From Haplodiscus bocki (taxonomy: Eukaryota), in contig OZ296655.1 of NCBI GenBank assembly GCA_965655095.1, positions 39,990,001-40,054,000 on the forward strand: DNA of 64,000 nucleotides, read 5' to 3'. How positions within the stretch are numbered: the first letter of the stretch is position 1; each line of letters begins with the position of its first letter. The notes under the pieces are model-generated. The model was not told the origin of the DNA and did not search any database. It saw only the letters and a list, made by a program, of their open reading frames with translations. Position numbers and translations under genes: made by a program. This document shows positions 7,400-41,618 of this stretch, one piece after another.

Positions 7400-8200
7400 A
7401 GACGGAGGGGTGACTCTCAGATACCGCAGCTCCTATCAGTGCGACTATCGGAGAACTCTTGAAAGTATATCAGTTTGAATAATTAACACAAATCGAAGTA
7501 ACGTATTAGATAGAAGATGCTGTGTTCTCGCAACTAGCAAAACGGCATTATTTGTGAAAAACTTTTGCAAGAACAACTTTCAGTATAGGTTTGTGCAAAA
7601 AATTTTTATGATCGAAACTTTGAAAATTTTTTCTGGTCTTGGCCTTGACTCAGAAAAACCTATTTGCGCTTTTTCCCTTGATCTTTCCAAGCTGTATGTG
7701 AATTAAAGTCAATTCTGGATTTAAAACTTCAAAGTCCGTGGAAGCTGCAGATTTTTGTAGGTACTTTCTTCAGTTGTTCTTGCGTTCATACGATGGTCAG
7801 ATGCAACGTCATTGTTTACTAATGAAAATCGTGGAGTAATCAAAGCAGTTTGTTCTTTGAAAACCTAAACAAAAGATAGAAGAAAGCTGTTGCGTTCTTA
7901 CAATGAACTGTTCAGTAGCTCTCGATTATCAACTCTAACAGGCAGGAATGATCAAAAACACTGTTAATTGAAAAGATTTTGCAATAAGTGCAATAAAAAA
8001 ATATATATATTTTCCAGTCTCGGAAAATAATATATATTGGCTTTTTAGGAAAATAATGTTTCAAGTCATCAATCTGAAGCGAGTTCCGCGCACCTCAAAC
8101 GTTGTTGAGCGTTTGTTCAGTCGTACAAAGAATAATGCACCAAGATATTGGCGAAAAATTCTCTAATGCATCTCGAATTACCAACTACCTTTTTGATACC
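7400..8200 (+). pseudogene. Decayed hAT-type transposase C-terminal fragment
   Basis: ~8080-8130 translates RVPRTSNVVERLFSRTK, matching the hAT C-terminal P-x-(T/S)-S-x-x-x-E-R-x-F-S motif; surrounding frame is broken by stops. Confidence 0.45.
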
Positions 8201-10132: not shown

Positions 10133-10332
10133 NNNNNNNNNNNNNNNNNNNNNNNNNNNNNNNNNNNNNNNNNNNNNNNNNNNNNNNNNNNNNNNNNNNN
10201 NNNNNNNNNNNNNNNNNNNNNNNNNNNNNNNNNNNNNNNNNNNNNNNNNNNNNNNNNNNNNNNNNNNNNNNNNNNNNNNNNNNNNNNNNNNNNNNNNNNN
10301 NNNNNNNNNNNNNNNNNNNNNNNNNNNNNNNN
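10133..10332. other. Assembly/scaffolding gap, 200 N
   Basis: Run of N. Contiguity across it is not guaranteed. Confidence 0.99.
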
Positions 10333-10659
10333 TAATTACAAAAACGTGTTTTTTTTCGTTATTAAATTGCCTTGCCTGCGGGATTAATATTTATAGTGTC
10401 GATTGGAAAGAGTTACAACCCAAATTTCGTATTAAGAAATGATTCTATCAAAATTTTTTCCTGTACTGAATAGATGATGACGATGAACCTAAATGTAAGG
10501 CCTGACATTTAACCTACAGTATAAACATAATCGACGAAAAGTTTGACTTGAAAAAAACTATAGTTTAGTCCGGGAAAAAATGCTTAAAAAAATATGAGAC
10601 CTCGCTAATGACTCTTCCTAGATAAATACCAATGATTTCGTCACCAAAGCTGAACTGAA

Positions 10660-13600: not shown

Positions 13601-16600
13601 ATTGATAAAACATTCCGCAGTGCGTGATACATTCATTGATTCTACGATCCTTCGAAATGAAAGATTGGTGCTTTTTACTCAGCATAGGAATGCTCATTTG
13701 GACTTCAAGCTCCATTGACATACGGTCCACTTGCTCATACTGAAAGGTTAATGCATTGTGCATAGGAATGTAAAACATTTTTGACTTTTAGTTTACTCCG
13801 ATTTTGTAGGTAGACGTCTATTGAGTGAAAATTGGTTGAAATGGACTTGGTATAGCCACAAAAAATTGAAGTTTCAGGTTCTTTTGGAATGCAGTAGACG
13901 ACAATGAGTCAAAAGTTGATGCAATTTATTCAGCATAGGGACAAAAATTTGGAATCTTTGTTTTGTGACACATTCAGCAACTTTGCATTGAACGACTGAT
14001 GCTATATACACGATACATTCAAACATATTCGGACGCTTCGGTTGTTTTTGGTTATTGTAGACATACTTATAAAGAAAGAAAAATGCAATACACGTGAAAT
14101 AGGCAAACAAATTTATACTCTTCGTCTTTTTGGCTTGGCATACCCTCGACAAAATCTCAGGTAAAGTTTTATCAAACATAGAGGAAAAAGAGACACATGT
14201 TCGGAAAACTAGTGAGTTATGACTGAACGTCATTATCTAAGTGATGAACGATTGATACATTAGATGGGTAGTGGGCCACTTAGTTTGGTGTTATAGTTCG
14301 TTTTGGCAAACCGTAAACATCTCTATAAAAACGAGAACATATATGTATAAAAGGGCGCCTAGGCTGAATTGGATTACTGTGGACATCCACGAGAGTATAG
14401 GCACCGAATTCTCTGTTTCGACTATTTTGAACACCATATGAGCATCTTTTTATTGGAAATTGGTGCAATATGCGTAGATTAAGGGTTTTGATTTTGACCG
14501 TTAGTTTGTTTCAGGCCACTATATACCTCTGTTAAGTGAAATATGGATGTAGTCGACAAAGAATTAGCAAGTTATCAGGACATTGATTTATTTATGACAA
14601 CGGGTGGCATCTATAGACTGAATGATTCATTCGTGAGAAAAAGAACGATCTCAAATCTTTGGACTTTGACTTCGTTTTGTCTGACTGTAGGCATTTGTAC
14701 GTTGAAATATGGATGCGTTGTTGTATAAAGCGTATACATGTTTGGTCTCAAAGATTGATTTGGGCTTGTGTAGACCTGTATAAAAAAAATTGAGGCAGTA
14801 TGGATAGAATGGTCACCCATTATTAGACACTAGGTTTGTTTTGGTAGACTGTGAAATTCCATGTAGTCTTCGGATGATGCAATTCAAAAAGGATAGGGAT
14901 AAAATGTTCGCCTCGTGGACCGTTTTGGGCTACTGTAGTAATAAATAAACTCTCAAAAGTTAACGAGGAAAACTATTTTTATGTACACAAAATCGTTGTA
15001 GCGTAAGATACAACTGAGTTACAGAAGACACCTATATCCTTATAGTTTTTGTAAAACACTGAAAAAAGGCACGAGTGTCAGTTGTTTCATTTTTTTTGGT
15101 TATTTCGGAGCCATCTCCAAGGTGAAATATTGATACAATTTACTTCAAAGGTTTTTACAATCTTTGACTCTACGAATAAACAGGAAGACTGCAAATGCCT
15201 ATAAAGCGAAAGATTTTTTCTTTTTACTCACCATAGCAACACATATTTGTACTTTAAGTACTTTTGACAAACAGTAGACACAGTAGTCATCTCCACACCG
15301 AGTGATTGATGCGCTGTAACAAGAAAAGTTTCACAAATTCCACTGTCAGCAAACTTTGTTTTCTTTGACGTCCATTAAATGAAAAATGGATGGAATGCAA
15401 TTGGTAGAGGCACAAAAACTTGGGGTTTCTGATTTTTCTGGAAAACTGTAGACTACTAAAAAAAGAAAATTTGATACCGTATACTTAATATAGACACATG
15501 TATTTGTACTTTGGGTTTTTTCTGATGCACTTTCAGCGTCAATGGATTGGACGACTGATGCAATACTTATGAACCAATCGAAAAACGGGCTACGGTCGAC
15601 ATGCAGTTTTCGATGATTAATGCAATACGCTCAGTATAGACACCCATATTTGGTTTTTGGCCGCTTTGTACATTCTGTAGGTGTTTTTGTGTCGGAAATT
15701 GAAGCAATATACATAAGCAAAGGATGTAGATCTTGACTGTTTGTCTTTTTAGGCTACTGTAGAGATCTATATTTTGAGAAATTGATGCCTTTTGCAGTAC
15801 ATAGATTAGGTAAACATGTTCAGACACTAAAGTTTAAGTTGGCAAACTGTAAACCTCTCTATAATAAAAAATAGATGCTTCGTACGTAGAGTTTTTTTCT
15901 GGACACAAAGGTCGTTTTGGGCTACTTTAGGCATCTGTAATGTGATGATTTTTGTTTTGAGCAAAAATCATATATTTTTCGTTTTCTTCATACCTTTTTT
16001 CTTAGGAGTACCGTAGGCACCTATAAAGTGACAGATTGTCGCATTTTTTAATTCATAGGCCTAATAAAAAGAAATCTTATCTTGTTTCGTGCAATTTCAG
16101 GCAAAAATAGTGTTGCAAAAGGATGAAGTTCAATGAGCGTAGGCACACATGCTTGAACTCGTACAGTATTTTGACTTATCGTAAACCTCATCAGAAGCAA
16201 AGATTGATGCAGTTCATTTTTTTTCACAAGCAAGGTTTCAGATTGCTTTGTATTACCATAGACCTCTGACAAAGTGAAAAACTGATGCAGTTCGCCCGGA
16301 CTGGGTACTTAGATTTAAAAATTTAAAATGAATAGACCTACTTATGGTAACATTATAGTTGAACATTTGTGCAAAATACTTTCGGAAGGCATCAATATTT
16401 GGATTCTAAGAGTTTTCTGGGTTACTTTAGACATCCAAAGCTCAAAACTTAATGTAAAATAAATTGGCCCACTTAGTTGGACTCTTAGATTGTTTTGATA
16501 TTTTTCAAGGATGTGTATTTTGATGGATGGATGATTTTCCACATTATGTCGGCGTAGTTAGTTTCGTTCAGACTGTTTGGAGTAACCAAAACACATCAAG

Positions 16601-17335
16601 AGTGAATAGTTGATGAAATTTACTCATCATGGGAACAAAGATTTGAACTTTTAAGTTATACTGTAAGGCTTGGCATACTGTAAGCATCTATACAATGACA
16701 AGTTGATGCATTGTACACAAAAAAAACGCATGCATATTTGAACTCTTTGATAGTTTTGGGCTACTGTGGACATCAATGTAGTAAATGGTTGAAGCAAAAT
16801 ACTTAGTTTAACACACATATGAAGGCACTCAGTTTGTTTTGGCGTAATGTAGGCCTGTAGCTAGTGAGAGACTGATACAATGTACTTGAATTAGGCAGAC
16901 ATCTCTGGACTATCAGATTTTCTTAACATGGTTTAGGCGTCCATCTGAAGATAGATTGATGCATTAAACATGACATTGGCTCACATATTTGCACTTATAA
17001 ATTATATTTGTTAACTCTAGGTAACTTTATATTTGAATGCTGATTCTTTTAAGATAGAATAGATATGCAAAGCTGGACTCATATTCTTTTGGTTCACTAC
17101 AAACGTCTATGTAAAGGACAAAACGGAAAATGATGCGATATACCTGAATTAGGTTATCAAAAGTGAACTAGATGGTTTTTTGCTCTTTGTGCGATATGTA
17201 TGTAGTGGAGAACTGTTAAAATATACCTAGTATGAGCTTACAAATCTTAACTGTTAGATTGTATTGGCATTCAGGATCTTTCTTTGTGGTGGAGGGTTGA
17301 TGGAAAAACAGAGAACTAGTATAAACATGTAGAAT
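10660..17335. repeat. Highly diverged tandem array (satellite), ~84-bp unit, roughly 75 copies
   Basis: Recurring unit similar to ctactgtaggcatctata..gtgaaagattgatgcatt.tactcagtataggcacacatatttggact..ttgttttggg. Unit starts at 11019, 11103, 11187; TTGATGCA-like cores at 16703, 16789, 16872, 16956, 17040. Left edge is fuzzy. Confidence 0.88.
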
Positions 17336-20300
17336 CTGGTAGTCAAATGGCCCCCCTTAGGCAACCCATTTTTGGAAATTAGGTCTGATTACCTTCCCTA
17401 CATTCAGTGAACTCAGAAAGCCTTTTCCTGAGCTGTGGACCAGACATGAAAATGTTTAGCAGTTTTCAAATGCTCAAATTGAAAAAACAGTTTGAGAAAC
17501 CCACGTTTTTAAAAGGTAAGCAATTGAGAATATCAAAACAAAGTCTCTTTTGCATGAACGTACAAAAAATTTATTCGATGTTTCTAGAAGTGAATCATCC
17601 CTTGACTCTTTCGTTAGCACTTTTTTAACCTTCTTTGGTTTCCATTTCCATGAAGTCTCAATACCGCGCCGACTCGTTCATCAACCACCAAGTTTCTATT
17701 ACTTTCCTTCCAGATATAAAAAAGTCTCAATGTCAATCGAACTAACTTCAAACACACTTCCAGTTTCCGGGTAAGTATCTTGTGCTTGTTGCTTGTTCGA
17801 CTACAAACCTACTCCTCGTTGGCGTTTCTTTTATCCCTTGCGCATAAAATTCTTCGAAATTATCGTTTAACTCGGAGTCACACTTATGCTTTTAGTTGAG
17901 TCCCGAGTCCGGAAAGTCCACTGGAGAACATCGTTTCTGTTGCTTCTCAAGAATTTGTTTGTCTTTTGCAGCTTTAGAGATCAGAGATGCTAGTTGATCA
18001 TGGGCAGGGCTGGTTGGGACAGGTTTCTGTTGACCTCATTCATCCCTTGTGGGCTATTATGGTAAACCAACTTCTCCCCTTTCACTATCAGCTTGTGTTT
18101 CTTCATTAAATTTACTATCACGGCACTCATAGTGAACGACTGGGAGACATGTAAGAATCAATTATAAGCGAAGCAGCTTAGAAAGAACTTGCTGCATAGT
18201 ATTGTGATATTGATATGTATATGATCCAGTTTTGTGTTGATAGTACAAGAAGACTGAGCTGTTGTCGATGTGTTTCGGAATTGATCAAAGCTTTGCTCCT
18301 TTCCTGGGTCCTTCGTCATTACCTACGTTGTTTTTGTTTATTATACCACTGTATTTTCTACAACTTCAATTTCAGTCCATCAGTCTGCTCGATGGGTTCA
18401 TCGGCAAAACAGTCTTTGAAATTCATCGAAACCACTTTGTATTGCTTTTTATAGATTTCATCGTTTTCTAGAAGTGCTTCTTTTTTTTTGATTTTCACCA
18501 GAAAGTCTGTGTCAAAGTAGAGAACGCGACAACTTAAGTCCTTTTTTTATTTTACAGTGCAAGCGATAAATTATTGGGACGATAAGTTTTTTCAGAAACA
18601 GTAGAATCATAGTGCCCACAATCATTTTCTGTTCCATAGAAGACCCCCCCTTTTTACTAGACACAGCAGCATGGTTTTCGGCAGAAGTCTTGATTAGGTT
18701 GAACAATTGCTGCTCTGTCTCCGAAATCATTGAGCCAGCAAACGAGTTTTGAAGGAAATCTTCAGGTCACAAGAACTATTTTTTAACTGGGAAGACTTTT
18801 CAATTCGTGTTTGGACTGCTGGTGCTTGAGCGTGTTTTTTGTGTTCAAGACCTTAACCCACATTGTTCTGTGAAGTCAGGACTCCATACACTTCTGTTAT
18901 TCTTAAATTGAGTTTAAAAAAAAACTTCTACTTAATGTGGTGCATCGTGTAGTTCCAGTTGTCATGTAGGGTTTGAACCGGTTTTTTTGTATCACTCTTC
19001 GAGTCATTTTCTGTCCTTATCCTAAAACAAGTGCCCTTGCAATAGCCCGAAACTTTAAAACTCATTTTTTCAATGACGGGACCAGAGGAAAGTGACGACG
19101 AATTTCGGCGTAGTGCTGGTTCACTTCTAGAATGTGTTCGACATCAGATGTGACCGGAGTGTATCTGGTTTCTCCCAGGTGCTTCTCCATTAATTCAAAT
19201 ATCTAAACAGGCCAAGAAACTTCTGCAGTGTGACCCTTTCATGTTGTCACTTTTGGAAGTATCCTCAATGCTTGTTTTTGGAGAGACTACTCTGAAAGAC
19301 GGTGGAACTCCTCTATTCTAATCTTGTCAACTATTGAAATTTGTCAACAGATCAACTGCTGCAGTTTGCTCACAGGAAGACATTTTCAGATTATTGTGAG
19401 CATATGAGATGATGTGAACTGTCCAGTGCTTTGGTTTCATAGAAAACTCTCCCGAAATACTCAACCACACATGCTACTAGAAAACTTTCAGTTTTGGGGT
19501 AGAGTTCGTGTTAATGTTTTGTGTTTGAACGAGCACAAGTTTTGTGTACATCTTAAGCATAATTCGATCGAGTTTGTGCATCATTCTTTAGGATGTTTTC
19601 CAAGAGGCAAGTGGAAGCAGCTGCTTTTGTTTAGAGTTATCGAGCTTTTCGGAAAAGGATTTTGGCTAAAATTTTCTTTACTTGTAGAAATTTTTGTAGA
19701 TGAGCTGTACGACGACCGTAATAGCCGTCAAATAGGCTTAATTTAACCTGAGGTGAGAAGTTCGCAATTTTTTGAGTGAAGAAATCATGCGTCGCAGACT
19801 ATGAACAATCCTGAGATAGTCACAAACTGTTTCAGCGACCTAATTTTTATCATTGTTCTTTTTAGCGGATATTTCGAACGATAGACATGTATACTTTCTG
19901 TCAGATGAACGTTTGAAGTTGATCATGTAGGCACTTGTAAAAACTCTGAGACTTTTGCAAACATGTTGCGGATCATGAGTGGACAAAGAAAAAGGAAAAA
20001 GGAACAACTTGACAAATCTTCTTTTCGAATGGCAGTCGGAATAAACAAAAGGAAGGAACATTCTGTTGCAAAAACAAGGATTAATTTTTGAAATGTTTGC
20101 TGAAAGGTTTCCAACCGATCCAGCAGCTGAGGTTAATTTCTTTTCTAGGATTTTAGCGTCTGTAAAAACGGTGAACTTGTTCGAGGTAAAACGAAATTTT
20201 ACGCAGGGGACTTGTGGAACCGCCGCCATCTCTGTCAGACTTTTTTTTGACTTCTCCCAATGAAAAAACAAGGTGTCTTTCCTTCCATCCACCATTTTCA

Positions 20301-27800: not shown

Positions 27801-30800
27801 TTGGCGTTATGGCAGAATATAAGGAACTGCTGCGAGCAAGAGAAAACCATACTGTTTTTTGTGGATTTGTAATTACATTAAAAAACTTACCGCAGTACTT
27901 ATAATGTATGGCAACAGTGATGCTAGCACCGTGCTGGAAAACCTCTTCTGCAATTTTTCACTCTGACACTTATCGAAAAAATTGTCCCCAACTGGTTAAC
28001 AGCTTACTGAGTAATTTTTACGCTCTTCCACTTCAGTAGGAACTGATTTTGAACGGGAAAGTCTGATTCGCAAAGGTTACAAAAAAACACAGATGGTATG
28101 ATGTTTCGATTTTTTCAGTAGGTATGACCTTACTTCTAGCATGGAGTAAAGAAAATATGAAATTTGAAGTCAATACTGGATTCATTTTCTGCATTTTTCT
28201 CCCCTCCTTGAAATTGAGGATAGGAAAAGGGTTTTTTTTTCTGGACTATTCTATTGATTACCGAAGTCTTTTGAAATCTGTCTTGGTAACCATGTGTCAT
28301 CAATTCTATTGGCTTTAGTCTGATTAAATAACTCGATTAGCTAAGTGGTGGTAAATTGTTCTTTTTGATCAGGTCTATTGGTCGACAGTTAGACAAGATT
28401 TTCGACGTTCTGAGAATTATACTCCAAAAAACGGTGACTGAGTTGATACTATTTTCGCGGCACCTGATTTCTGCAAGTGTATAATGGCGGATGGTTTCTT
28501 TCAAAACATTTTGATGAGCGATTTCCACTATTTCTTTTTGACTACGCAATTTTCTGGAGGTCTAACATTGCCCGGTCTCACCGCCATTAGTTGAAATGCT
28601 GTTGAGGGGTGTAGGGACAGATTCGTTGACAATAGTAGCTGTAGTTTCTGAATTTTATTATGGTTTCTGGACATCTGGTTGTCCTTGCTTGTTTATCCAT
28701 GTCTAGTATTGCAAGGCCTTTTTCCTCGAAGAATGGTCAAAGTAGCGTTCGCGTTGACTGAATGCAGAGCAAATTGTACTGATGTATTGAGAACAATCTG
28801 TTACTCTAGGACAACCGACAGTTTCTACCTTCATGACTGGGAGTTATTAGTTCCATAACAACCCACTTTCTTTCTGTCTCATCAAATAAAAGACATCACT
28901 TGAAAATGGGCGATATGAACGGATATCAAAGGTGAAAAGGAGTAAATTTTGTTGAGTTCCACTAGTCCAGTCTAATTCATGCAATTGTCTCGTTACCCAG
29001 AGATGTTTTTCTTGCGTCTTGAGTAATACTTTCTGTATCGAAGGGAGGTAAAAGACTTACCCCAAAATTTTGGCGAACAAACTGATTTTTCCTTGAAATC
29101 GAAAAAATGATTGAGTCGCAACGCTTCGAAGTCATTCTTAGCGTTTTTTGAGTTCAATATTTCTGTTTGCTGGTGAAAATTGGATGCAGAAGTTTCACTT
29201 TCAGAGTCAAGGAGAATAGATCAAAATTTTGTGAGTCTTTAGCACTTATCAAGGAAATTTTTCTTCCAAGGATACAGCGTAGTTTGGAGAGTTTACTTTG
29301 TGGAAAAACCAAACATTCTACTTTCTGAAATATCGAAATTTTTATTCACGGTGATTTATGATATCAGCAAAAACGAAAGGATCCATAGATAGGGTAAACG
29401 TGAAGCTGCAATGGTCTGCATGCATCTGTTTAAAAAGTGTCGGAATTACCCTCCAATGAGGAAGTATCGCTAACATGGAGGTAATTAAGAGTCATCAAAT
29501 CTCGTGAGCTTGTCTTAGTAGAAACAAGAAAAATTCGTGAAAATTGTGACAAACGTAAGTTCTATGACGAATGTTTGCATACAGTCGTCCTTGTAACGTA
29601 AGCAAAGTCTTTCCGCCAAGTTCTGCACTGGAATTCTATGCAGAGTCAAAATTCTGTTTGTTGTGTCGCAAATTTCATCAAAAATTCAAGAGATTTTCAC
29701 TGGTTCTTGGTTAGTAGAGGGAGTTGTAACTTTTTGGCACCCAGTATGTCGTAATTCTGCTTTCGGTATCGCAGGGTTGAACACTGACGAATAACCTCGG
29801 TGTGTTGTAATGATGACCAATACTACTTTTTTACACGCCTGTTGTTATCAGTTTGTGGTGATGAGCCAGTAAAACCGTCGCTTGCTGGTGAAACGATCAT
29901 TAGAGCTCCAAATTCTCAAAACGAGGAATTTCAATCTTGGTTTCCAAAATGTAAAAGAGGCCACTCTTTTGATTTTGACTGCATCATACAAGAGCTTTTT
30001 TCTGAATACGCGGTCTTTTCAGTAAACTTTCCAAAATCTAGTTTTATACTCAAATTTTGTCAAGCGTAGATGGAACTGTTAACGTGCGTTCGTGCTTCAT
30101 GAGTTGATTGCCGACTGATATTTTTCGGAGATTAATGCTACTTGCATATGTACTTTTTTGACTTTTATCCCAGCGGACATTTTTGGGCAGTGCATTTGGC
30201 ATCCATTGTGAAAACATGATCATCCGTTCAAATATTATTGTTTCATTTGCACACTTGTTTCTACGATAATGCATTCTTGCAATGTCACCAGTATTGGCTT
30301 TGCCGAAATTGATGCGACATTAAAACTATGTTCAAAAAGCGCAATCAGTGAAACGCAAAATCTAGTGATCAAGGTAGGTTGATTTTGATCGTCGAACCGA
30401 GGAATTAGTTTCCAATCCCACCCGCCTCGAAAATTCATACATTGTTGTGTTTGATGTAATTCTGAACTTCCAAATTTTATTCAATTGAATTAATGACAAC
30501 TTTATGATACTTTGGCGCAGGTGAAGAAACAAAATTTTTCCCATATGTACAACAGTTAACAGGTGCGATCCCCGCTGTTCATATTTTACAACAAATAATA
30601 ATGGTGTAGATATACTGGGCCTAAACCCTCTGTGGCGTGGCCCGATAAAGCGGTTAAAACCGTGGAAATAAAGCTGTTAGTTCCAAGTTTGAATTAACAA
30701 CTGAGAGTTTATTCTAACAGAAATGGCTTGAATTCAGCAGAATTATAAACAAATCAAAACTTTGTCCGAACGTTTTTCTTTGAACCGTTTGTTCGGTGTC

Positions 30801-30934
30801 GATGAAACAAGCCCCTATGTTCAGTTTCTCTTAGTTTAGCCGGTTTCAATTTCATCCGCTAGAGGGCGTCTTTTCATGCTTTCGGAAGAAGTTTCCATAA
30901 TCGGCTCTGATTGGCCAAACAAACTTTCATAGGC

Positions 30935-31027
30935 AAAAAGAAAAAAAAAGGTTCGGTCCGATCGGGAATCGATCGCCGGAGCTTTCTTTTACGAGTCCCG
31001 GACGCATACCGTTACGCCACCATTGCC
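30935..31027 (-). ncRNA. tRNA-Thr(CGT)-like Pol III cassette inside the LTR (tRNA-derived, probably not a functional tRNA)
   Basis: Minus strand: GGCAATGG TGGCGTAACGGTATGCG TCCGGGA CTCGTAA AAGAAAGCTC CGGCGATCGATTCCCG ATCGGACC, then T9-C-T5. A-box-like, anticodon-loop-like, B-box-like elements and an oligo-T terminator; stems pair poorly. Confidence 0.55.
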
Positions 31028-31242
31028 ACGGTAACGCCGGTTACGAGTTCGCTAAATAGACACACGCAACGGTTTAATCCGCGTGCGTGACCGCTTACTT
31101 GATTTAATTCGCGTACGCGACAAGAAGCCTATTTATTCTCTTAGAAAATAAAATTACCTAAAAGAGTTCCGGATTTCCTTCAATTGAGATTTTCCTTATG
31201 GCGACACATTGTTTTCGTCCTCAATCCTGCAAGGGCTTGAGT

Positions 31243-31306
31243 ACGATCGATCGCCGGACCTTTCGTTTACGAGTCCCGGACGCATACTGTTGCGCCATCA
31301 TCGCTA
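31243..31306 (-). ncRNA. Second, 3'-truncated tRNA-like copy in the partial LTR
   Basis: TGGCGCAACAGTATGCGTCCGGGACTCGTAAACGAAAGGTCCGGCGATCGATC; near-copy of 30968-31027 that stops within the B-box. Confidence 0.45.
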
Positions 31307-31351
31307 CGGTAACGCCGGTTACGAGCTCGCTAAATAGACACACGCGACGGT

Positions 31352-34300
31352 TTAATCCGCGTACGCGACATCCTCCCGCCTGGGAGAAGACGAGTCGAGA
31401 ACATAAACAAGTTTTGTGGTCGGTCGAGTGAATACGCCGGCCGAAGATCGGATGACAGCTGAACGAGCAATGCCGTCGCATCCGTAATGGAGTTCTTCAA
31501 CTCGAGCGAGCGGGTAGAACCCGTGGGGACTTGTTGGTTCAACGATCCAAACTAAGTCTCCTGTCTTCAATGTGGTAGGGTCTTGCCGGTTCCACTTCGA
31601 TCAAACATTAAGGGTTGGGGCATACTCTGTCAACCACCGATGCCAAATTGCATTGGCGTATGCGACTGACTTTCGATACCGTTGCCGGTGATCGTCAGGT
31701 TGAGCTTTTTCTGGCACATGAAACAATGATGCAGCGCTTGGACCACCAAAGAGAAAGTGATTTGGGGTAAATGCATCGAGATCCTTTGGATCGGAGCTAG
31801 CCGCCGTTAGCGGCCCTGATTTCAGAAACTGCTCAACCAAGCAAAACGTAGTTCTCAGCACTTCGTCCGTAAGCCTTCGATTTCCCCAGTATTTTGTAGA
31901 AGAGAAGCTTACAGCTCTGAACAAGGCGTTCCCAACTCCCTCCGTGATGGGGTGCTGACGGCGGGTTGAACTTCCATTTAATGCCTTTGGACGCAGACGT
32001 TCGCGCTACCTTGTCGGGATCAAAGTTCGCGAAACAGAGGGCCAACTCTTTGTCAGCACCAACAAAGTTGGTGCCGTTGCCAGACCAGATCGTATGTGGA
32101 TGGCCCCGACGCGCAGCAAACCGCTCAATGCCCATGACACATGAGCTGGTGTCCATTTTAAGCACAATCTCTATGTGAACGGCGCGCGTTGTCATGCAGG
32201 GAAATAGGAACCCCCAACGTTTTTCGGTACTTCGTCTAACGGAGACGTGGAAGGGACTAAAATATTCCATCCCCGTATACGTGAATGGGCGTTCCTGGTA
32301 CCCTAAACACTCTCTTAGGAGATCGGCCATCAAAGGCGTCACTGGCGTTGCGCGATGTTTCCGACAAGTGACACAACACGAGCTGATGGAGCGCAGAGTT
32401 GAACGGAGTTTTAGCACTGCGAACGTTTTCTGTATATGAGCACGCAGGAAAACAACGCCTTGGTGGTGGTTGCTGTCATGAACGTGCTTCAAGTAGAGCC
32501 GAGCAAGCGGGTAACGACCATCAAGAACTACCGGATGTTTTGTTTCATACGGAACAGTAGATAGCCGTTTCAGTCGTCCTGCTGCTCGAATCAACCCATT
32601 TTGTCCCACAAAAGGAACGAACGCAGCTATGATGCTGTTGGAAGCAACATATTGTCTTTTTGCGAGCGCCTTTTGTTCTTTTGGGAACATCTCACTTTGT
32701 GCCAAAAAGAGTAGCTCTGCTTCAGCTCGACGAAATTCTCCGGGATCGATTGTTGAGGTTCTGACCGAATCTCGGAACTTGGGGTTGACCCGCAGCATGT
32801 AGGCAACCGTGCGCACTAATTTCGTGTAGGAGCTGTAGTTAGTCCATATGATGAATGGCTCGACGCATTTAGATGCACTTGACATCGTCGTCTGCTGTGC
32901 AACCGGCGGATCCTGTATCAACTTCGGTGACTTCAGTAGGACGCGTTGAGTTGACGGTTGGAATGGCCAATCTTCAGTACGAAGAAACTCGGGACGGTTT
33001 ACCCACGCACTGTTCTTCAGTTCATCACTCGACATTCCCCTCGTGACCACATCGGCGGGGTTGTTCGTTGAAGACAGATGAGCCCATTCATCCCCGGTTG
33101 GTGCATCTGAAATCTCCGATATGCGGTTCGCGACGAAGACCGGTTGCTTTTCGGGGGAGTGAAGCCACTGGAGGACCGCGCTGCTATCGGACCACATGTA
33201 AACTTTTTCAATCGCAAGCGTAAGCGATGCCTCGACGTGGCGTTTCAAGCGGGAAGCTAGCAATGCAGCTTCCAGCTCTAAGTTGGGGATTGTCAAAGAG
33301 TTCATTGGCGCAACGCGTCCTTTTCCGATCACAAATGCCAGTTGCGTTGAGCCGTCGCTCTTTTGCCGGGCACGAAATGCGACCGCTCCAAACACTTCCT
33401 TTGAACTGTCGCCAAAAACCTGAAGCTCAAGGGATTCCACAGGCTCACTGAAGTAGCATCTTTGCAGTTCTAGCGTACTGGGCTCTGGTAATGCTTTGCT
33501 CCAATGCAGGAATTCTTCGGTCAGTTCTTCTGAGAGGACTTCATCCCACTGCTGGCCATGCAATCGCCACACTTCCTTGAGCATAAGTCGAGCTTTAATT
33601 GTGTAGGGTGCAACTAAACCAATGGGATCGAAGATACTGGCCACGCGATTCAACACTAACCGCTGCGTAACTGGTTCAGTAACCGATCTGTTCACTCCAC
33701 GGCTTACTACTAATGTGTCGCTGCGCTGATTCCATTTCAATCCAAGAACGTGTGAAGACAGTTCACAAACTTCCGGTATGCCTGGTGACTGATCTTGTAA
33801 CGGTGGTAGACTAGGTGGCAGATTGAAGTTGCTAAAAAACTTCGTTAGCTTGAAGCCACCTCGCTTCAGCAGAGTCACAAGGTCTTGGCACCTTTCCGTT
33901 GCTTCTTCGGACGTAGCAAAGGATTCCAAGTAGTCGTCCATGTAGAAATTATTCCAAACATTTCCGGCTGCTCGAGAGAACTCCTTGCAATTGTCGTCTG
34001 CGGTTCTTTGTAGCGCATAGTTTGCGCAGGTCGGGGAGTCTTTGGCACCGAATATATGACGGGTATACTGGTGCACAACCACTTTTTGAGTGGGGTACTC
34101 CCGCCACAAAAAACGAAGTGAAGTTTGGTCCTTGTCTGGCACGCCTACCTGCAGGAACATCCCTTCGATGTCCGCCGAGACTGCGTATTGGTGTTGGCGA
34201 AACTTCAAGATGATGTAGAGCAGGTTTTGCAATAGGTCCGGTCCAGTCCTGTTTGTGAAACAATGCAGCACCGTTGAGGACTCTCCGGACTTTCCCTGGC

Positions 34301-35260
34301 TTGTTCGGGTTGAGCACCGGGTGGTGAGGCAAGTACCATTCACGTTTTGAACGCTTCTGCGACTCACTAGGTTCCACTATTTTCACATATCCCTTCATCT
34401 GAGCGTCTTTGATCGTCTGAGCGTACCTTTCCCGCAGGTCTGCGTCCTTGCTCAGGCGATTTTCGAGGGACTTCAGTTGAGTGAAAGCGGCATAGTAGTT
34501 GTTCGGCAACTCGATGTGGGGTTCTCGCCACAACATTCCCACAACGTACTTTTTTCCATCATGGAACGTGGTCGAGTGCAGATTTCCTTGGCACGTGATT
34601 CCTCCGCCGAACTGGGATCTACGTTTTTCACAGCTCCGAAGGTTTCCATATCGTACCAAAGTTTAACTTCTCGAGCAAGAGTTGAGTCTTGTTCGCTACT
34701 CGCCTCGAAGCAAGAAGCCGACAAGTTCGATGTTGAAGGCAAGGGAGCACTGAGGACCCATCCGATTGGCAGTCGTACTGCTACGGTTGACGATTTGTCA
34801 GTACTTGATACGAAGTACTCCATTGGACGGATGGCTTCGTATGCATCCTGCCCAAGTATCATACTCACGCTGGAGTAGTCTATTTGCGTACCTGGCACTG
34901 CATCCAGGTGAGGGTATTTGGATTTCAAGGCTGCAACGTCGATGAAGTCTCTGACAACATCAATCGAAGATTTTGTGAACGCGTTGACTGTGAAAACCTC
35001 TCGTCCTCCGTCGGGTAAGATCGAGCAAAAGTTCATCTCAACCGTTCGGGTTTGGACCACTTCTTGGCAATTGATACCGTTTACGGTGATGGAAGTCACT
35101 TTTCCATCTAGGGACAACTTCTGCGCCAAGTCGTCTGAGATCCACGTGTGACTACAACCGGAGTCACAAAGAGCAAAAACGTTGATTACTTTAGTGGGCG
35201 AGAAAACTTCGAGTTCGCCGATTTGTAGCAGGCCTTTCACACCCGTTGTAGACGTCTTCC
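31352..35260 (-). pseudogene. pol: BEL/Pao pol: aspartic protease, RT, RNase H, integrase, C-terminal DUF5641-like region (frameshifted)
   Basis: ALCDSGCS (protease); WYLPHHPV..PNKPGKVRRV, ADIEGMFLQV, FGAKDSP, FYMDD (RT); FGDSS..GAV, WSDS, NPADVVTRG (RNase H); H..HHQG..CVTC, RAVHIE, APHHGGSWERL (integrase). Integrase Asp positions read GMEYF and SGNGTNF, so the enzyme is likely dead. Confidence 0.95.
31371..31380 (-). promoter_or_regulatory. Polypurine tract (GGCGGGAGGA) of the BEL element
   Basis: Lies at the end of pol and directly abuts the TG of the LTR. Confidence 0.85.
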
Positions 35261-37754
35261 TACTTGAGGTGCTGTTGTGAGCTGTCGAAGCAGCTTTCGG
35301 TCTTGCAGCTGATGTATCTTGAGTGGTCTGCTGCGACGTGGTAATGGGAGTTTTGTTCCAATCCTTTTGACGGGAACACGCGATCAGCGCCGTGAAGGAG
35401 ACTATTGTGAGTCAATTTGCAATTGTCTTTGCCGCAAGTTCGAGCACGGGAACAATTACGTGCATTATGACCCTTTCCGAAGCAGGATAAGCAAAGCTTG
35501 TTGTCGGCAACAATCTTTGCTCTTTGATTGAGGGTCTTTTCGCGAAACACTTTATATCTGAAGAGGGTGTTTTCCCTTGCAGACAGGACACAATTCATTG
35601 GTCCCGGATGACGGCGTTGTCGATTCGGATGCGGAAGCGAAAGTCTTTGTCGCGGTCTTCACTTTTGTTGTCGTTGAATTTGGTTCTCCTTTTGGTTTTG
35701 TTGCAGAGCCAAGTTGCATCCGATCATGTGCTTCGGCTTTCTCCTGCAACCAAAAGTTGAAATCGAGGAGGCTCGGACGTAGCCATCCCTTTTTGACCGT
35801 GTGAAGCGACCAAGACTCTTTGAGGTTCGGTGGAAGTTTTTGAACAGCCTGGTTCAAGAGCGCAGAACTGAAGAGATCAGCATCATACTTCAGAGACTGG
35901 AAAACTGCAATAAGGCTGGAGATCGCACAAGCATAATTATGCTTTCTGAATTGTGGATCTTTACAGCGGGGTAGTTGCTCAACTTTTCCAGATGAGCGGT
36001 GACAACTGCTTGGGGCTGCCCGAACTTTCGTTCAAGCGCCTTCAGAGCGTCGCGGTACAGCGCACCACTATACGCAAATCCCTCAATGGCAATCTTCGCC
36101 CTTCCGGAGACGTCTTCAAATACGTCATCTTTACCTCGTCAGTTATTGCTGCTTGGTCGACTGCACTCTTGAATTGTCCGTACCACTCATGCCACTGAAG
36201 TGGGTTGCCATCGAAGGTTGAAAGTTTCCACTCGGGCAGTTGATCTTTCCGCGAAACGGTTGGAAGTTTGGCAAGATCAATCATGGTCAAAGTGGCGTTC
36301 GACGAGGACAAATCTTCTACCGGCCGATGAGACTCCGTGTTCTCAACTCCGAGTGCAATCGATGTAGCCGGTGCGTAACTGCAAGTATTTTCAGCCGTCG
36401 TTGAAGGTTGATAGGTCGGAAAAACCGAGGATGTCATGTAAGGGGTCTTGTGGTAGTACGTAGTGCCTCCGATACTACATGAGTAGTGCGGCTGGGTGTT
36501 TTGCGATTAAAGCATGTTATCGGTGACAACAGTTGTTAGGTTCTTGGAGGAAGCAGGTGTCTTGAGAAAGTTATGAAAGAGTTCGTCCAACTTCTTCGAA
36601 GCCTTGGGAACCGCAACTAATGATGGAGCAAGTGCTGAAGCCACATTTGGTTTGGGCTGGTTTCGATTCCGAATATCGAAGCGAACATTCGGCTGTGGAT
36701 CTTCAAGAAAATCAGGTTGGTTATCGGTTCAACGGTCTTGGGAAATTGATCAGGTGCGGCAGGACCTTGTGATGAAGTCGGGTTCGCATTAAGTACGTTC
36801 TCGACAGATCTCGGGAGAGCATCGTCGTTGAGGGTCTCAGCAACACGACATCTGAACCGGTTTGCAAGCCAACGGTCCCAGTGGCACCAGCGCTATTAAC
36901 CCAAGCCTCCGTTCGTTCGGAACCATTTGTCGCATTGTCGAAAAGTCCCTCAAACCGATCGCCGTCGGCCTCTTCTTCGTCGTCGCTCTCCAGATCTTCT
37001 ACCGCAACTTCATCCAACTTTGCTTGCTCAAGTCGTTGCCGATTTTTCTCCTGCAGCTCAAACACTGCGAGCATAGCCTTTCGCTTGGCAAGCTCAGCTT
37101 CATGCTCGGCTTTTTGACACGCCAGGGAAGCTTTCTGCTGCGCTCGCCGCTGAGTTTCCACAGCTTCCTGCTCAGCCTGTGGTCGAGCCTGCTCAGCCTG
37201 CTGTTCGGTCTGCCTCGCATGGTGTTCAGCCTCCAATCTTTCTTGTTCTGCTTTTTCCTGAGCAAGTCGTAGTTCAGCTGCGTTTTGACGTTCTACTTCC
37301 TCGCGCTTTAACCTGGCAATTTTCTGTTGATGACGTCGTTGGCTAGAGGAAACAGAAACTTGGCTCTTGCTGGTTGCCTTGCTCTTTGAATGTTTGCTGG
37401 ATCGCTTCGCTGTGCCTTTCGAATCCGAATGCCGGGATCCTCCCTCTTGTTTCGCCGATTGAATTGATATAGGCTCGTGCTTTACTCCAGTACTCATCGT
37501 TTAGGGCAATTAAGCCTTCCGACCACTCCTCGAGAATTCTTGTCAGGTCCTTCGGGTTTCGCTGCCAATTTGAGAAGGTCTTCATTCTTTTCAAACGCAG
37601 CCTGGAATGTAGACTTCGAGCCGTTGACGAGTTTATCCACTTTCACGCGCCTATCCTTTCGATCAATCGCTTCATCTATCAATTAATGACAGATTTTGAG
37701 CTCCTTCTGCAGTTTTGTTCTGCTAGCGTAGAGCTTCTGCAACTTTTCCTCCAT
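35260..37754 (-). pseudogene. gag: BEL/Pao gag (coiled-coil N-terminus, DUF1759-like region, three Cys/His knuckles), disrupted
   Basis: ATG at 37754 (MEEKLQKLYASR..); PEWKLSTFDGNPLQWHEWYGQFKSAVD; CPVCKGKHPL, CLSCFGKGHNARNC, CGKDNCKLTHNSLLH; several stops and frameshifts. Confidence 0.9.
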
Positions 37755-37783
37755 GGCGAGTTGGGGATTGGGTTTTGCGTCAG

Positions 37784-38123
37784 GAACTACTGAAAGTTCT
37801 AATGTCGCGCACCCCCAGGGAATTGGTCTGTTCCGAAACTCTGCGTGCCACGAACTACTTAAAGTTCTAGAGGCCCTTTGAGCTCCGGTCTAGACTAAGG
37901 GACGGGTATTGGAGGATGTCTAGGATGCAACTCCTCAAACAGGAGTTCACACTCGATGATTAGATTGGTAGTGACACCGGACCGAACGGTTCACTCAAAT
38001 CAATATGATTTAGCGATCGACTGCGTATCCGTTTACCTTCACTACTATTGGCCTGAACCGGAAACTTTCCGTGCAACGAACTACTGAAAGTTCTAGAGGC
38101 TCTTCAAGTTCCGTTAGAACCAA
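37784..38123. repeat. Repeated hairpin motif in the BEL gag leader
   Basis: GAACT-ACT(G/T)AA-AGTTC at 37784, 37852 and 38078; the last two sit within a ~75-bp imperfect direct repeat (37824-37897 vs 38049-38123). Confidence 0.8.
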
Positions 38124-38160
38124 ACGACTGAAAACTAGAGAAAACAGAGTGAAAGAAAAG

Positions 38161-38781
38161 TTAATTGAAAGTAACAGTAACGGTAATGTTACTCCGGGCA
38201 ATCCGTCCTGCAGGACGTTGATCTTGCGACGACCGTTTAGTCTGTGAACGTCGATTCAACAGCTTTCGCAGATCGGTTTCGTTCCGGAGTACGGTCCGTA
38301 ACAAACTTCGTTCGGTATCGGTACGAGGATGAAGGGTCGTGAGGTCACTCCGAATAGCGAAGTTACGGCGTTTCTTCGGTGACAGTAGTTTTCCCACCGG
38401 TAAGATCAAAATGCCCGATGAGCACAGCTGCCGAAACACGTATGGAGTTTTTTCACGCTGAATATAGACAATGGCGGCTATCCGGTGTCTATGTCTTGCT
38501 AGTATGTGCAAGAGCTGCTGAACGGAACACGCGTTATAGTTGTTGCTACGGTGACTTGAAAGCGTGTTATTAATCAGATCGTGCCAAATCACGATATCGG
38601 CTCGATGCCGCAAGCAACCGGTGCTTAGCAAATTGTCTAAATTTTTCAAGTAGTTTCGCGCGTTCGGGTTGAAACTTAACCCGGGAGTGGCAAAAGTTCT
38701 CGCAAGCAACCTCCGCCGAAGCCTAAACGGTGAATCGTCAACTGCGTACCGAAGTGAACTAGCGCCGATTACATAGACCAT
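38161..38781 (-). CDS. Intact 206-aa SGNH/GDSL hydrolase-like accessory ORF upstream of BEL gag
   Basis: MVYVIGASSL (block I, G-x-S), TPGL (block II Gly), DIVIWHDLINN (block III Asn), DLTTLHP (block V His); basic C-terminal tail; same strand and GC level as the element. Confidence 0.65.
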   Translation of the reverse strand: MVYVIGASSLRYAVDDSPFRLRRRLLARTFATPGLSFNPNARNYLKNLDNLLSTGCLRHRADIVIWHDLINNTLSSHRSNNYNACSVQQLLHILARHRHRIAAIVYIQREKTPYVFRQLCSSGILILPVGKLLSPKKRRNFAIRSDLTTLHPRTDTERSLLRTVLRNETDLRKLLNRRSQTKRSSQDQRPAGRIARSNITVTVTFN

Positions 38782-39914
38782 AGGACTTTCGGGAGTTTTG
38801 CTGCCCCAATTTCAATCATTTTTCTTACATTTTTTGGGTGAGATAGATGTTCTGATGAATCATGTTCTGACATGCTTTGCGTTTTTCATTACGCTTAGAA
38901 TTGAATATAGAAAGTCATATTATATTCAAAACCATTCAAGTAGTTCAAACACTTCAAGTTATGTACTTTCAATACGATCAGTTTTATTCCCACGCCACAA
39001 TATTTGATTAAGTTTAGAAATATCTGCAAACAAATTGGCATTCTTGCCAGAAAACGGGAGCCGAAGTTTTTTGTTGAAAATCATGACAATAGGATGCTTA
39101 TCACCTTTTTTGACAGAAGCGAAGCTGCGCTTCGCAACACTCGCAGCAACGGAAAACTAACAAATCAACCAATTACAACTGATTTTTAAAGGGGCCACGG
39201 TACTACAAAACTATTGATTAAACAGAAATTTAAATCAATCCTCAAAAATTTATAGTGTAAAAGTTCGAACGACTATACACTTAATTCGCTTTAGTTTTGA
39301 AACAAGCGCGCAAACTGGGCCAGCTGAACGATTTTCTGCAAGTGAGCGAGAGCGCATGAACAAAATCTAGGCAAAATTGGAATGTAGGAACAAAAAAACA
39401 AACGCGAGTTCTGAACGGATCGGAAAACAAAGTGTCAAAAACCTGTGATATAGCACTTGCTTGTGCAAGTGTAAGCATATATGAATATTTTGAACACAAT
39501 ATTCATTTTGACCCTGTTGAAAGACAGAGAGCCCAATTTTCTGAGCGACTTTGACACTTCCAGAAAACATTTATTGGTCTACATCAACGCCATCCCAGTT
39601 TTTCTTCGCTCAAGCAACATATCACTTTCTATTAATCTTGAACTAATAATGACTTCACGATCAATACCCTGAGCAAACACAATTGGCGGACTTTCGTGGT
39701 ATTTCTTGTCGTAGACTCGGCCTTGCCTTTGACATTGCTCCTTAAAAGTTTTTCAAAATTTTTTCATGCAAATTAATCCAATTAGGCTAATATTTCATCG
39801 ATACACAAAATGATATGTTAACAGCAAAAAGCATAAAAAGTGACCATAACTGTATCAGGAGGTATTTTCTTCTTTCACGTTATTCCGTTGAATTGTAACT
39901 ATGAAATGATATTA

Positions 39915-41618
39915 TTACTCAAGTGCATCTGCGTAGCCTGTTTCCATGGCAATTTGAGAACTAGATCTCATTTTGGAAGCTGCCAGTTCTGACCTTCGAA
40001 GGTAATCAATATCTAAAGGATCATAGTCCTGGATATCTGCGGAATTTTCATTGCCGAAATCGCCACCGATAGGGGTTGCATTCGGAGACTGATTTAGGGT
40101 GTTTCTTTTGCCTCTGGGTACGTACATCCGGTTCGATTGGTTGCGGTCAGTATTTTGGGGAAGGGTGCCTCCATTTTGCAAGCTAGTTTGCGAATCGGCT
40201 CTCAAAAAGGTTTGTCTAGGTCCTGTTTTGACAACCAGTGACATTTCTGAAGCCCGCAAAGCAGCTTGGTGTATGTTGGAAGGTTTCTTGGAATACCGTT
40301 GGTTTGAGTTCGCAAGAGGATCCATTTCAGCCGCGTAGTAATTGTAAAGCCGTTTCTTAGATGACCAATACTTGTAAACAAAAAACAGCACAAGAAAAAT
40401 TAAGATTATTACAAGTAGCGCAAATATTGATGTCATTATGACCCAAATTGCGACATTTTTGAAGTCACCAGATTTGTTAACTAGCATAATGACTAATTGT
40501 TCGCTGTCTGGTTGAATTTGATAGTTGAACTTAAAATCTCCGAGCTGGCTTGATATTGTGTAATGCTCGTTAAGAATAGCTTCTATTATTTGCCGCTTGA
40601 CCAAATTTGATTTCACGCAAAAATTAACTTTTCCGCCATTTTCACCATAAAACATCGGCCGGTAGTTCGTTATGGTAATTGGGTTTTCTTCAGGCGAGCA
40701 AACTCTTATCAACTGACAGAAGTCGTAAATAGCCAAAGAAAGTTCGTGGGTAACTTTGCTGTGATCCTTAATTGAGTTGTCGGAACCGGGAAATATTATT
40801 TCGAAACAAACAGGATCAGTGTTTTCTGAGAGCTGTAAAGAAGTAATGTTGGCATTTAATTGGTTGCCATTTGGATTCTTGGATAAACTTTTCTCAAAAT
40901 CAATCAGAATTTTTTCCAGAAAATGTGCGTTAAAATCAGGATTGTTTATTGACTCGATAGCGAAGTTGAGATACGAATTTGGTGAGAAAGAGAATACAAC
41001 TGTGTTATAGAATCCTTTTAAATCTCGGCTATGACTGAAAGCTTGACCAAAATAAGATTTCACAAGCTGTTCGTAATATCTGTAGAGCGACGAATCGTGG
41101 TTTGATAACTGCAGGTAATAATACGAACTTGGATGTTTTAGGTGCGAAATATTCATACTTCCGTAAATTATATTGTAGTCCGAAGAAAAACAAATATTTA
41201 ACAGGAAATCTTCGTTTTTCTGCAAATTGTCAGAAGCATAATATTCAAGTAAAACGTTAGCACTGAGATCTTTTTTGTAAATATCGATTTTTCCGTTGTT
41301 GTTGAACGCTTCAATTGAAGGTCCTTCCGAGTCTGTATCTGGGGCAGTCCAAGCATTTGCTTCCTGAGTTTTTGTCGGATAAAATATCTGTACTTCGGTA
41401 CTACTTTGTCGATAAAATTTGGTCCTCAAAACTTCAGAAGTTGTGATATTATATTGACACTTCTTTTGAGATCCGTAAACAAGTACTCCATATTTTTGGT
41501 TACGGCATTGGGAATCACATTCACAGCAGACTGCATCCGGAGACCCCAAATTTCTGGGACTCGAAAATAACGCGAGTGGTACCAAAATTAAAGTTAGGAT
41601 AAGGTTGTGACACAACAT
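39915..41618 (-). CDS. Intronless single-pass type I membrane protein, CUB-like plus SEA-like ectodomain (567 aa)
   Basis: Uninterrupted 1.7-kb ORF in AT-rich DNA. Signal peptide LILTLILVPLALFS; CQYNI...VQIF...NVLLEYYASD...EDFLL (CUB-like); LSNHDSSLYRYYEQLVKSYFGQAF...VFSFSPNS (SEA-like); TM VAIWVIMTSIFALLVIILIFLVLFFVY followed by KYWSSKKR; ~150-aa low-complexity cytoplasmic tail. Confidence 0.88.
   Translation of the reverse strand: MLCHNLILTLILVPLALFSSPRNLGSPDAVCCECDSQCRNQKYGVLVYGSQKKCQYNITTSEVLRTKFYRQSSTEVQIFYPTKTQEANAWTAPDTDSEGPSIEAFNNNGKIDIYKKDLSANVLLEYYASDNLQKNEDFLLNICFSSDYNIIYGSMNISHLKHPSSYYYLQLSNHDSSLYRYYEQLVKSYFGQAFSHSRDLKGFYNTVVFSFSPNSYLNFAIESINNPDFNAHFLEKILIDFEKSLSKNPNGNQLNANITSLQLSENTDPVCFEIIFPGSDNSIKDHSKVTHELSLAIYDFCQLIRVCSPEENPITITNYRPMFYGENGGKVNFCVKSNLVKRQIIEAILNEHYTISSQLGDFKFNYQIQPDSEQLVIMLVNKSGDFKNVAIWVIMTSIFALLVIILIFLVLFFVYKYWSSKKRLYNYYAAEMDPLANSNQRYSKKPSNIHQAALRASEMSLVVKTGPRQTFLRADSQTSLQNGGTLPQNTDRNQSNRMYVPRGKRNTLNQSPNATPIGGDFGNENSADIQDYDPLDIDYLRRSELAASKMRSSSQIAMETGYADALE

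Follow-up and report, generated by a model that had tools for sequence, protein, structure and literature searches.

A 64,000-nucleotide stretch of the Haplodiscus bocki genome (contig OZ296655.1, positions 39,990,001 to 40,054,000 of the forward strand; the whole stretch is called the window below) contains a decayed long terminal repeat (LTR) retrotransposon of the BEL/Pao class, and ahead of its gag lies an intact open reading frame (ORF) that raises the question of whether elements of this class carry a separate gene for a protein resembling the SGNH hydrolases. This frame, here called ORF0, was present in the ORF listing of the window from 38781 to 38161 on the minus strand, encodes 206 amino acids (aa), and ends 406 nucleotides (nt) before the gag ATG at 37754. 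The original prediction, made from the letters alone, had described a 206-aa ORF on the strand of the element about 400 bp before gag, with the SGNH-like blocks GASS, PG, HDLINN and LHP in that order and with the GC level of the element. All of this was seen again: the protein reads G6-A7-S8-S9, P33-G34, H67-D68-L-I-N71-N72 and L150-H151-P152, and its GC content (48.5%) is that of the element (49.6%, an island of about 30.9-38.8 kb), as against about 36.5% in the flanks. The observed/expected ratio of CpG was 1.57 in ORF0, 1.12 in the element (31000-38800) and 0.84-0.89 in the flanking DNA. The GC-rich island could be assigned to BEL/Pao, as had been proposed, because the Pfam domains Peptidase_A17 (1.1e-40), RVT_1 (7e-7) and Integrase_H2C2 (4.8e-5) were found in the largest open piece of pol, downstream of ORF0 and on the same strand; DUF1759 gave no match at E<=0.01 in the open gag pieces of the window.

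The intactness of ORF0 in the window proves nothing, because the density of breaks in the adjoining gag-pol would leave a 618-nt stretch open with P ~0.29 (exp(-1.25) = 0.29). Breaks were scored against the uninterrupted 2135-aa gag-pol of a related element (L008), to residues 4-2135 of which the window gag-pol aligned by tblastn at a mean identity of 60.6%; about 8 frame changes and 5 in-frame stops, about 13 in total, were counted in the window, bearing out the many disruptions reported earlier, and 3 and 5, 3 and 4, and 0 and 2, respectively, in the related copies L001, L002 and L009. The caution in the original prediction that a short intact ORF may be due to chance was thus justified, and the open ORF0 of this one copy is not more than chance. 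An ORF with no relation to BEL, whether a separate insertion beside a truncated element or a chance frame in decayed DNA, would be consistent with that estimate, with the position of ORF0, which lies at the extreme 5' margin of the GC-rich island and has no 5' LTR ahead of it, and with the uninformative dN/dS of the close copies, in which only 6 synonymous and 9 non-synonymous changes were available, too few for the ratio.

The relatives of ORF0, however, refute both the separate insertion and the chance frame. A word search returned 32 of them, many being intact 206-aa copies at 92-98% identity and others reaching down to 31%. At five loci or pairs of loci (L001/L002, L003, L008/L009, L010 and L012) ORF0 was separated by 200-430 nt from a downstream DUF1759 gag with a Pao-type pol, which amounts to at least five diverged BEL lineages in four assemblies; DUF1759 was detected in gag by Pfam in L002, L003, L008, L009, L010 and L012. 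In L001, L003 and L008 the order was 5' LTR (TG..CA), primer-binding site (PBS), leader, ORF0, spacer, gag-pol and 3' LTR, the PBS lying 2 or 3 nt past the 5' LTR and the leader measuring 318-871 nt with 1-4 upstream ATGs. The LTR pairs enclosing ORF0 were 96.8-100% identical, and a target-site duplication, AATAA, flanks L001 (8723-8727 and 18221-18225) and L008 (8517-8521 and 17835-17839), while no clear duplication was seen in the flanks of L003. Since it sits inside the LTRs and after the PBS in L001, L003 and L008, ORF0 is an internal gene of the element between PBS and gag, and the linkage that the original prediction had asked for in full-length copies holds. ORF0 has also diverged together with the element and at the pace of pol, because between the two intact elements, L003 and L008, identity was 51.5% for ORF0 and 54.6% for pol (40.4% for gag).

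Some further features of these copies are of interest in themselves. The AATAA duplication shared by L001 and L008 hints at an AT-rich target preference of the BEL lineage. L001 and L002 are two contigs of one assembly that hold the same element, flanked at equal distances by the same genes, and their ORF0 sequences differ by one synonymous change; they are probably haplotigs or a recent segmental duplication, not independent copies. The two tandem BEL copies of L012 lie at 613-7597 and 10326-17178.

Selection on ORF0 could be read between sublineages. Between the window and L008, pN (the proportion of non-synonymous differences) was 0.154 and pS (the proportion of synonymous differences) 0.71, the latter saturated, giving a dN/dS of about 0.08; ORF0 is under strong purifying selection at this level, so the dN/dS comparison proposed earlier succeeded between sublineages and failed among close copies, where it rests on too few changes. 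By exhaustive profile search with clustering at 50% identity, the family comprised at least 915 clusters (E<=1e-3), with 617 at <=1e-10 and 181 at <=1e-30, nearly all of them stand-alone proteins of 190-215 aa beginning at the first strand, and none of these clusters was named in any source. Among 82 diverse members with a mean column identity of 23%, the most conserved columns included S8 and A7 (78/82 each), G34 (75/82) and H151 (81/82); W66 and H67 were kept in 78/82 each, D68 in 75/82, N71 in 66/82, N72 in 77/82, Y106 in 76/82 and R109 in 75/82, and methionine stood at column 1 in 61/82. Several longer members look like upstream over-extensions by the gene caller; P0013 (251 aa; 10001-10756 in L008/L009) is a gene-caller read-through of a natural TGA stop, and under the standard code its ORF0 has its last residue at 206, like the ORF0 of the window. 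The ORF0 family is a real conserved gene, clearly beyond chance, and with ORF0 lying inside LTR-bounded elements, linked to gag in five BEL lineages, diverging together with pol and belonging to a family of this size, an origin unrelated to BEL is scarcely credible.

The second part of the question, whether ORF0 encodes an SGNH hydrolase, was addressed through predicted structures. The core of the protein comprises approximately residues 1-175, followed by a disordered basic tail (about 176-206). AlphaFold modelled the window protein with a predicted local distance difference test (pLDDT) score of 87.1 and a predicted template modelling (pTM) score of 0.80, most of the core being above 90 and residues 179-200 disordered, and modelled a member 42% identical to it, linked to a long interspersed nuclear element (LINE), with a pLDDT of 94.2. 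Foldseek placed the GDSL-like lipase 3p94 first for both models, and more than 40 of the top 50 PDB matches of each were SGNH/GDSL proteins, as the structural check suggested in the original prediction required of an SGNH-like protein; further matches included PAF-AH Ib, thioesterase I, OatA/PatB, and acetyl-xylan and sialate esterases. The SGNH matches had probabilities of 0.9-1.0, template modelling (TM) scores of 0.40-0.50, root-mean-square deviations (rmsd) of 5-6 Å and a best E of about 1e-3. In the viral library the named matches were SGNH domains of phage proteins, and a few non-SGNH alpha/beta proteins appeared low in the lists. In the window model, S8 follows strand 3-6 and starts helix 8-15 (block I, reading G-A-S, not G-D-S), G34 follows strand 29-31 (beta2; block II), N71/N72 follow strand 63-65 (beta3; block III) and H151 lies in the loop between the C-terminal helices (block V). 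As modelled, the conserved S8, G34, N71/N72 and H151 thus fall at the positions of SGNH blocks I, II, III and V.

Compared with cellular SGNH hydrolases, ORF0 has its best matches, over about 200 aligned columns, in proteins such as 3p94, the alpha subunit of PAF-AH Ib and E. coli thioesterase I/TAP, and it shares with them a size of 175-215 aa and the block order I, II, III, V. It differs from them in an identity of only 8-18%, in lacking a Pfam GDSL match, in having A-S for D-S in block I and no DxxH, and in being very basic, tailed by a disordered segment, multi-copy and retroelement-encoded. The isoelectric point (pI) of the window protein is 11.5; the median of the family is 10.5, 81 of the 82 members exceed pI 9, and the median net charge over their last 35 residues is +10. 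No hydrophobic segment was found in the ORF0 protein.

Several observations weigh against an SGNH hydrolase. The block V aspartate, expected three residues before the histidine, is absent, the 82 members having a mixture of K, T, R, A and Q there, while the position five residues before the histidine is acidic in 46/82; a main-chain oxygen takes the place of the acid in 5 of 30 solved SGNH folds (PMC10792757). No GDSL/SGNH Pfam family was matched by the window protein or by any of the 82 members (82/82), sub-threshold noise from KaiA_N and TPR being all that was returned, and a phmmer search of PDB together with two profiles found nothing relevant. 4c1b, the esterase domain of the zebrafish LINE ZfL2-1, was not returned by either profile even at E<=10, and it was outside the top 50 Foldseek matches of both models; its crystal is a domain-swapped dimer (PMC3905857), which may explain why fold search did not recover it. 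The fold matches are moderate in TM score, rmsd and E value, the asparagine pair lies within a helix according to DSSP in the models and not in the loop typical of block III, and the extreme basicity suits RNA binding as well as a membrane role. The SGNH-like identity therefore stood as far as the predicted fold and the Ser, Gly, Asn and His positions are concerned, and did not extend to sequence, since none of the sequence methods connected ORF0 and its relatives with an SGNH family.

On these grounds the likeness might be superficial, with ORF0 a generic three-layer alpha/beta/alpha protein of some other function in which the order of the motifs is coincidental; the modest TM scores and E values, the missing link at the sequence level and the few non-SGNH alpha/beta proteins low in the lists would all agree with this. 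The dominance of SGNH/GDSL proteins among the PDB matches of two separate models, the SGNH identity of the named viral matches, the coincidence of the four name-giving residues with the most conserved columns at the expected secondary-structure positions, and three block-level idiosyncrasies common to ORF0 and the ZfL2-1 esterase make it quite improbable.

An SGNH esterase domain is known in the ORF1 protein (ORF1p) of non-LTR elements of the CR1, L2 and RTEX clades, for example in zebrafish ZfL2-1 (PDB 4c1b) (Kapitonov & Jurka 2003; Schneider et al. 2013, PMC3905857). The catalytic residues of the ZfL2-1 domain are S143, G165, N195, D279 and H282, and at two further positions, H191 and S228, which are hydrogen-bonded to each other, conservation is restricted to transposon esterases; the domain has weak esterase activity and binds acidic phospholipids through a positively charged surface (PMC3905857). 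ORF0 resembles it in being retroelement-encoded 5' of the reverse transcriptase (RT) gene, in its SGNH-like predicted fold with Ser, Gly, Asn and His kept, and in its positive charge. Both have a histidine four residues before the block III asparagine, in ORF0 H67 before N71 (78/82) (PMC3905857), and both share with the 4C1B blocks a P-G in block II and an L-H-P in block V (PMC10792757). The best HHpred template for the esterase ORF1 of the L2 clade is likewise 3p94, which tops the ORF0 fold searches too (PMC4120745). The near-invariant Y106 ends strand 4 at roughly the distance expected for an equivalent of ZfL2-1 S228 and is a candidate counterpart of it. In contrast to ZfL2-1, ORF0 shows no sequence-detectable similarity to 4c1b and lacks the block V aspartate; in contrast to the ORF1p esterases generally, it has no N-terminal coiled coil, its first strand starting at residue 3, it is a separate cistron of about 200 aa before gag (in BEL) or before a second ORF (in LINEs), and it is carried by an LTR element.

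Taken as a whole, the evidence is best explained if ORF0 is a genuine accessory gene of BEL elements whose SGNH-fold product works like the esterase of LINE ORF1, which we regard as probable; catalysis and lipid binding specifically, argued by analogy with ZfL2-1, are put forward more tentatively. ORF0 would then be the first cistron of the genomic RNA, between PBS and gag, and would yield a minimal stand-alone SGNH-fold protein that keeps the Ser-Gly-Asn-His positions and lacks the canonical block V aspartate. Such a protein might serve as a weak esterase and an acyl- or lipid-binding module, in the manner of the ZfL2-1 ORF1 esterase domain, and its basic surface could take the assembly of ribonucleoproteins or particles to negatively charged membranes and/or RNA, while the disordered, Lys/Arg-rich tail may also hold RNA.

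The first ORFs of retroelements usually encode nucleic-acid binders, and ORF0 could accordingly be a non-enzymatic SGNH fold that, being basic, binds or chaperones the RNA of the element, much as the OSK domain of Oskar binds RNA. The core and the tail are both extremely basic, the canonical catalytic aspartate is absent, and OSK, a small SGNH-like animal domain with a basic surface, is cited as a non-catalytic, RNA-binding SGNH fold, so that the fold is evidently usable for this purpose (PMC10792757). The catalytic residues are gone from OSK, however, while 75-81 of the 82 ORF0 members (91-99%) retain Ser, Gly, Asn and His, and an active site is hard to deny because this degree of conservation is found at a mean column identity of about 23%. 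The absence of the aspartate loses weight in view of the solved folds that use a main-chain oxygen instead (PMC10792757), and binding to oligo(A) RNA was not observed for the ZfL2-1 esterase (PMC3905857). There is no sequence link between ORF0 and OSK, and OSK was not among the top fold matches of the ORF0 models. A purely RNA-binding protein is, on balance, unlikely; enzymatic and RNA-binding roles of ORF0 are not mutually exclusive.

ORF0 is not confined to BEL elements. Relatives of similar divergence lie directly 5' of non-LTR elements in L004, L005 and L011, where ORF0 comes first, then another ORF of about 300-350 aa, and then an ORF with apurinic endonuclease (APE) and RT domains, so that they head their elements much as the esterase-bearing ORFs of known non-LTR elements do. 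Another relative is followed by ORFs that carry PHD-type and GIY-YIG domains, a neighbourhood that fits a Penelope-like element because similar ORFs in L011 also show a weak RT match. In L011 itself, the Penelope-like element (weak RT, PHD and GIY-YIG; 17731-20259) lies 3 kb downstream of the ORF0-bearing LINE, and no ORF0 was called in front of it; the relative P0030 in L006 lies downstream of a gypsy-like pol for which no LTR pair was found.

A neighbour-joining distance tree of 11 context-labelled ORF0 proteins was star-like and weakly supported, and did not separate one acquisition by BEL from several. Five BEL-linked proteins grouped at 57% (weak), the BEL-linked protein of L012 paired with a LINE-linked one at 73%, and two LINE-linked proteins grouped with the Penelope-linked one at 100%. 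Judged from these sequences, exchange of ORF0 between retroelement classes is likely. ORF0 is a shared accessory module of retroelements and not specific to BEL; the LTR lineage with an accessory protein envisaged in the original prediction is accordingly borne out as regards a genuine conserved BEL gene, and too narrow in that the module also heads non-LTR and Penelope-like elements.

An LTR element with an esterase-type ORF has a precedent. The Vesta LTR retrotransposons and the Athena Penelope-like elements of bdelloid rotifers have a GDSL esterase/lipase as ORF3 (Rodriguez et al. 2017, PMC5408684). As with ORF0, an SGNH-type ORF is found there in an LTR element and in common with Penelope-like elements, with modular exchange of accessory ORFs (PMC5408684). 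The differences are several: the Vesta esterase is an ORF3 downstream of pol whereas ORF0 lies upstream of gag; Vesta is a rotifer-specific, retrovirus-like LTR lineage that its authors do not call BEL/Pao; and its GDSL domain is detectable by HHpred and does not cluster with LINE esterases (PMC5408684). The literature searched contained no account of an esterase-like 5' ORF in BEL/Pao elements, which is no proof of absence. Of the undescribed BEL architecture that had been suggested, what survives is the layout PBS-ORF0-gag-pol, for which the literature searched held no published example; the tRNA-like LTR cassette that was to be part of it does not, as neither ARAGORN nor Rfam (in E-value mode on the element and in gathering mode on the whole window) found a tRNA or RNA family or anything tRNA-like anywhere in the element, and Vesta is an earlier case of an esterase in an LTR element. 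A stand-alone 5' ORF0 in BEL/Pao is a new layout of an already known theme, the retroelement esterase.

The spacer between ORF0 and gag has a feature of its own. The window spacer contains three copies of an 18-nt core that forms a small hairpin, GAACT/AGTTC (38095-38078, 37869-37852 and 37801-37784, minus strand), where 0 would be expected by chance. It recurs exactly in the same spacer of L001/L002 (10687-11024) and L008/L009 (10693-10783), although the ORF0 sequences of the two lineages are about 29% apart in nucleotides, and it is absent from L003, L010 and L012; the folding z of the spacer was -1.9. As read from the sequence, the core is a possible cis-acting signal, either for packaging or for translating gag from its place after ORF0, and the conserved hairpins could possibly help gag-pol to be translated downstream of ORF0.

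The copy in the window, the features of which are collected in Table 1 together with the BEL-linked relatives, is 5'-truncated. The stretch 38816-30631 matches L001 9966-18220 at 93.7% over 8304 columns; homology opens at L001 9966, 35 nt before the ORF0 ATG, and beyond 38800 the GC content is 30-36%. No LTR pair was found within the window, where the element has kept only its 3' LTR and lacks the 5' LTR, the PBS and about 740 nt of the leader, so a full-length element is ruled out. The copy is dead, and its open ORF0 is a relic of the gene. The 3' LTR aligns to the 495-nt LTRs of L001 (8729-9223 and 17726-18220).

Table 1. Features of the BEL/Pao copy in the window, and BEL-linked relatives of its ORF0
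Feature	Position in window	Strand	Basis or remarks
ORF0, stand-alone 206-aa very basic SGNH-hydrolase-like protein (predicted fold)	38161..38781	minus	ATG-to-stop ORF, family, AlphaFold/Foldseek
5'-truncated BEL/Pao LTR retrotransposon copy, whole	30631..38816	minus	L001 alignment, GC island, Pfam domains, 3' terminus ...CCACA
Leader remnant, 35 nt, upstream of ORF0	38782..38816	minus	homology to full-length copies begins here
ORF0-gag spacer, 406 nt, three 18-nt hairpin cores	37755..38160	minus	repeat search, core counts, folding
Broken gag-pol (outer bounds only)	31352..37754	minus	tblastn with L008 gag-pol, Pfam on open pieces
126-nt unit copying the first 126 nt of the LTR	31246..31371	minus	direct repeat, 91%; also in L001/L002
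3' LTR, about 461 nt	30631..31091	minus	aligns to both L001 LTRs; terminus ...CCACA
L001/L002			ORF0 96% identical to window
L008/L009			ORF0 74% identical to window; L008 with uninterrupted gag-pol, LTRs 99.8% identical
L003			ORF0 52% identical to window; gag and pol intact, LTRs 100% identical
L010			ORF0 44% identical to window
L012			ORF0 38% identical to window; two tandem copies

Three further observations concern the window and its close relatives. The partial LTR copy of 126 nt (window 31371-31246 against 31091-30968; L001 17446-17571 against 17724-17849) lies 278 nt upstream of the true start of the 3' LTR and overlaps the end of pol; since the LTR of L008 itself reaches into the end of pol, a new LTR start, together with about 150 nt, may have been acquired there in the lineage of L001 and the window. 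Just past the truncated 5' edge of the element there is a single-exon ORF of 567 aa (39915-41618, minus strand) with a hydrophobic N-terminus, one internal hydrophobic segment and no Pfam family, which, to go by these features, could code for a membrane protein of the host. At 10133-10332 there are 200 consecutive N, an assembly gap or a masked stretch.

Until now, esterase domains in retroelements have passed for a peculiarity of rotifer elements and a handful of LINE clades. ORF0 adds to them a new BEL/Pao gene layout of PBS, ORF0 and gag-pol, and a family of hundreds of clusters that is recognised by no curated model and has been missed by annotation pipelines; it offers a comparative system for what an SGNH module does in retroelements of different classes, and poses the problem of gag-pol translation downstream of a 200-aa cistron, for which the spacer hairpins provide a lead. 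A wider reading, possible although we hold it to be rather doubtful, is that ORF0 represents a large unannotated, retroelement-specific lineage of minimal SGNH esterases that shares ancestry with the ORF1 esterases of vertebrate LINEs and whose members have passed, as complete 5' cistrons, from one to another of the BEL/Pao, non-LTR and Penelope-like elements that share an animal genome. Were this so, engagement with membranes or lipids would be a recurrent need of intracellular retroelement replication across classes, and not a quirk of a few LINE clades.

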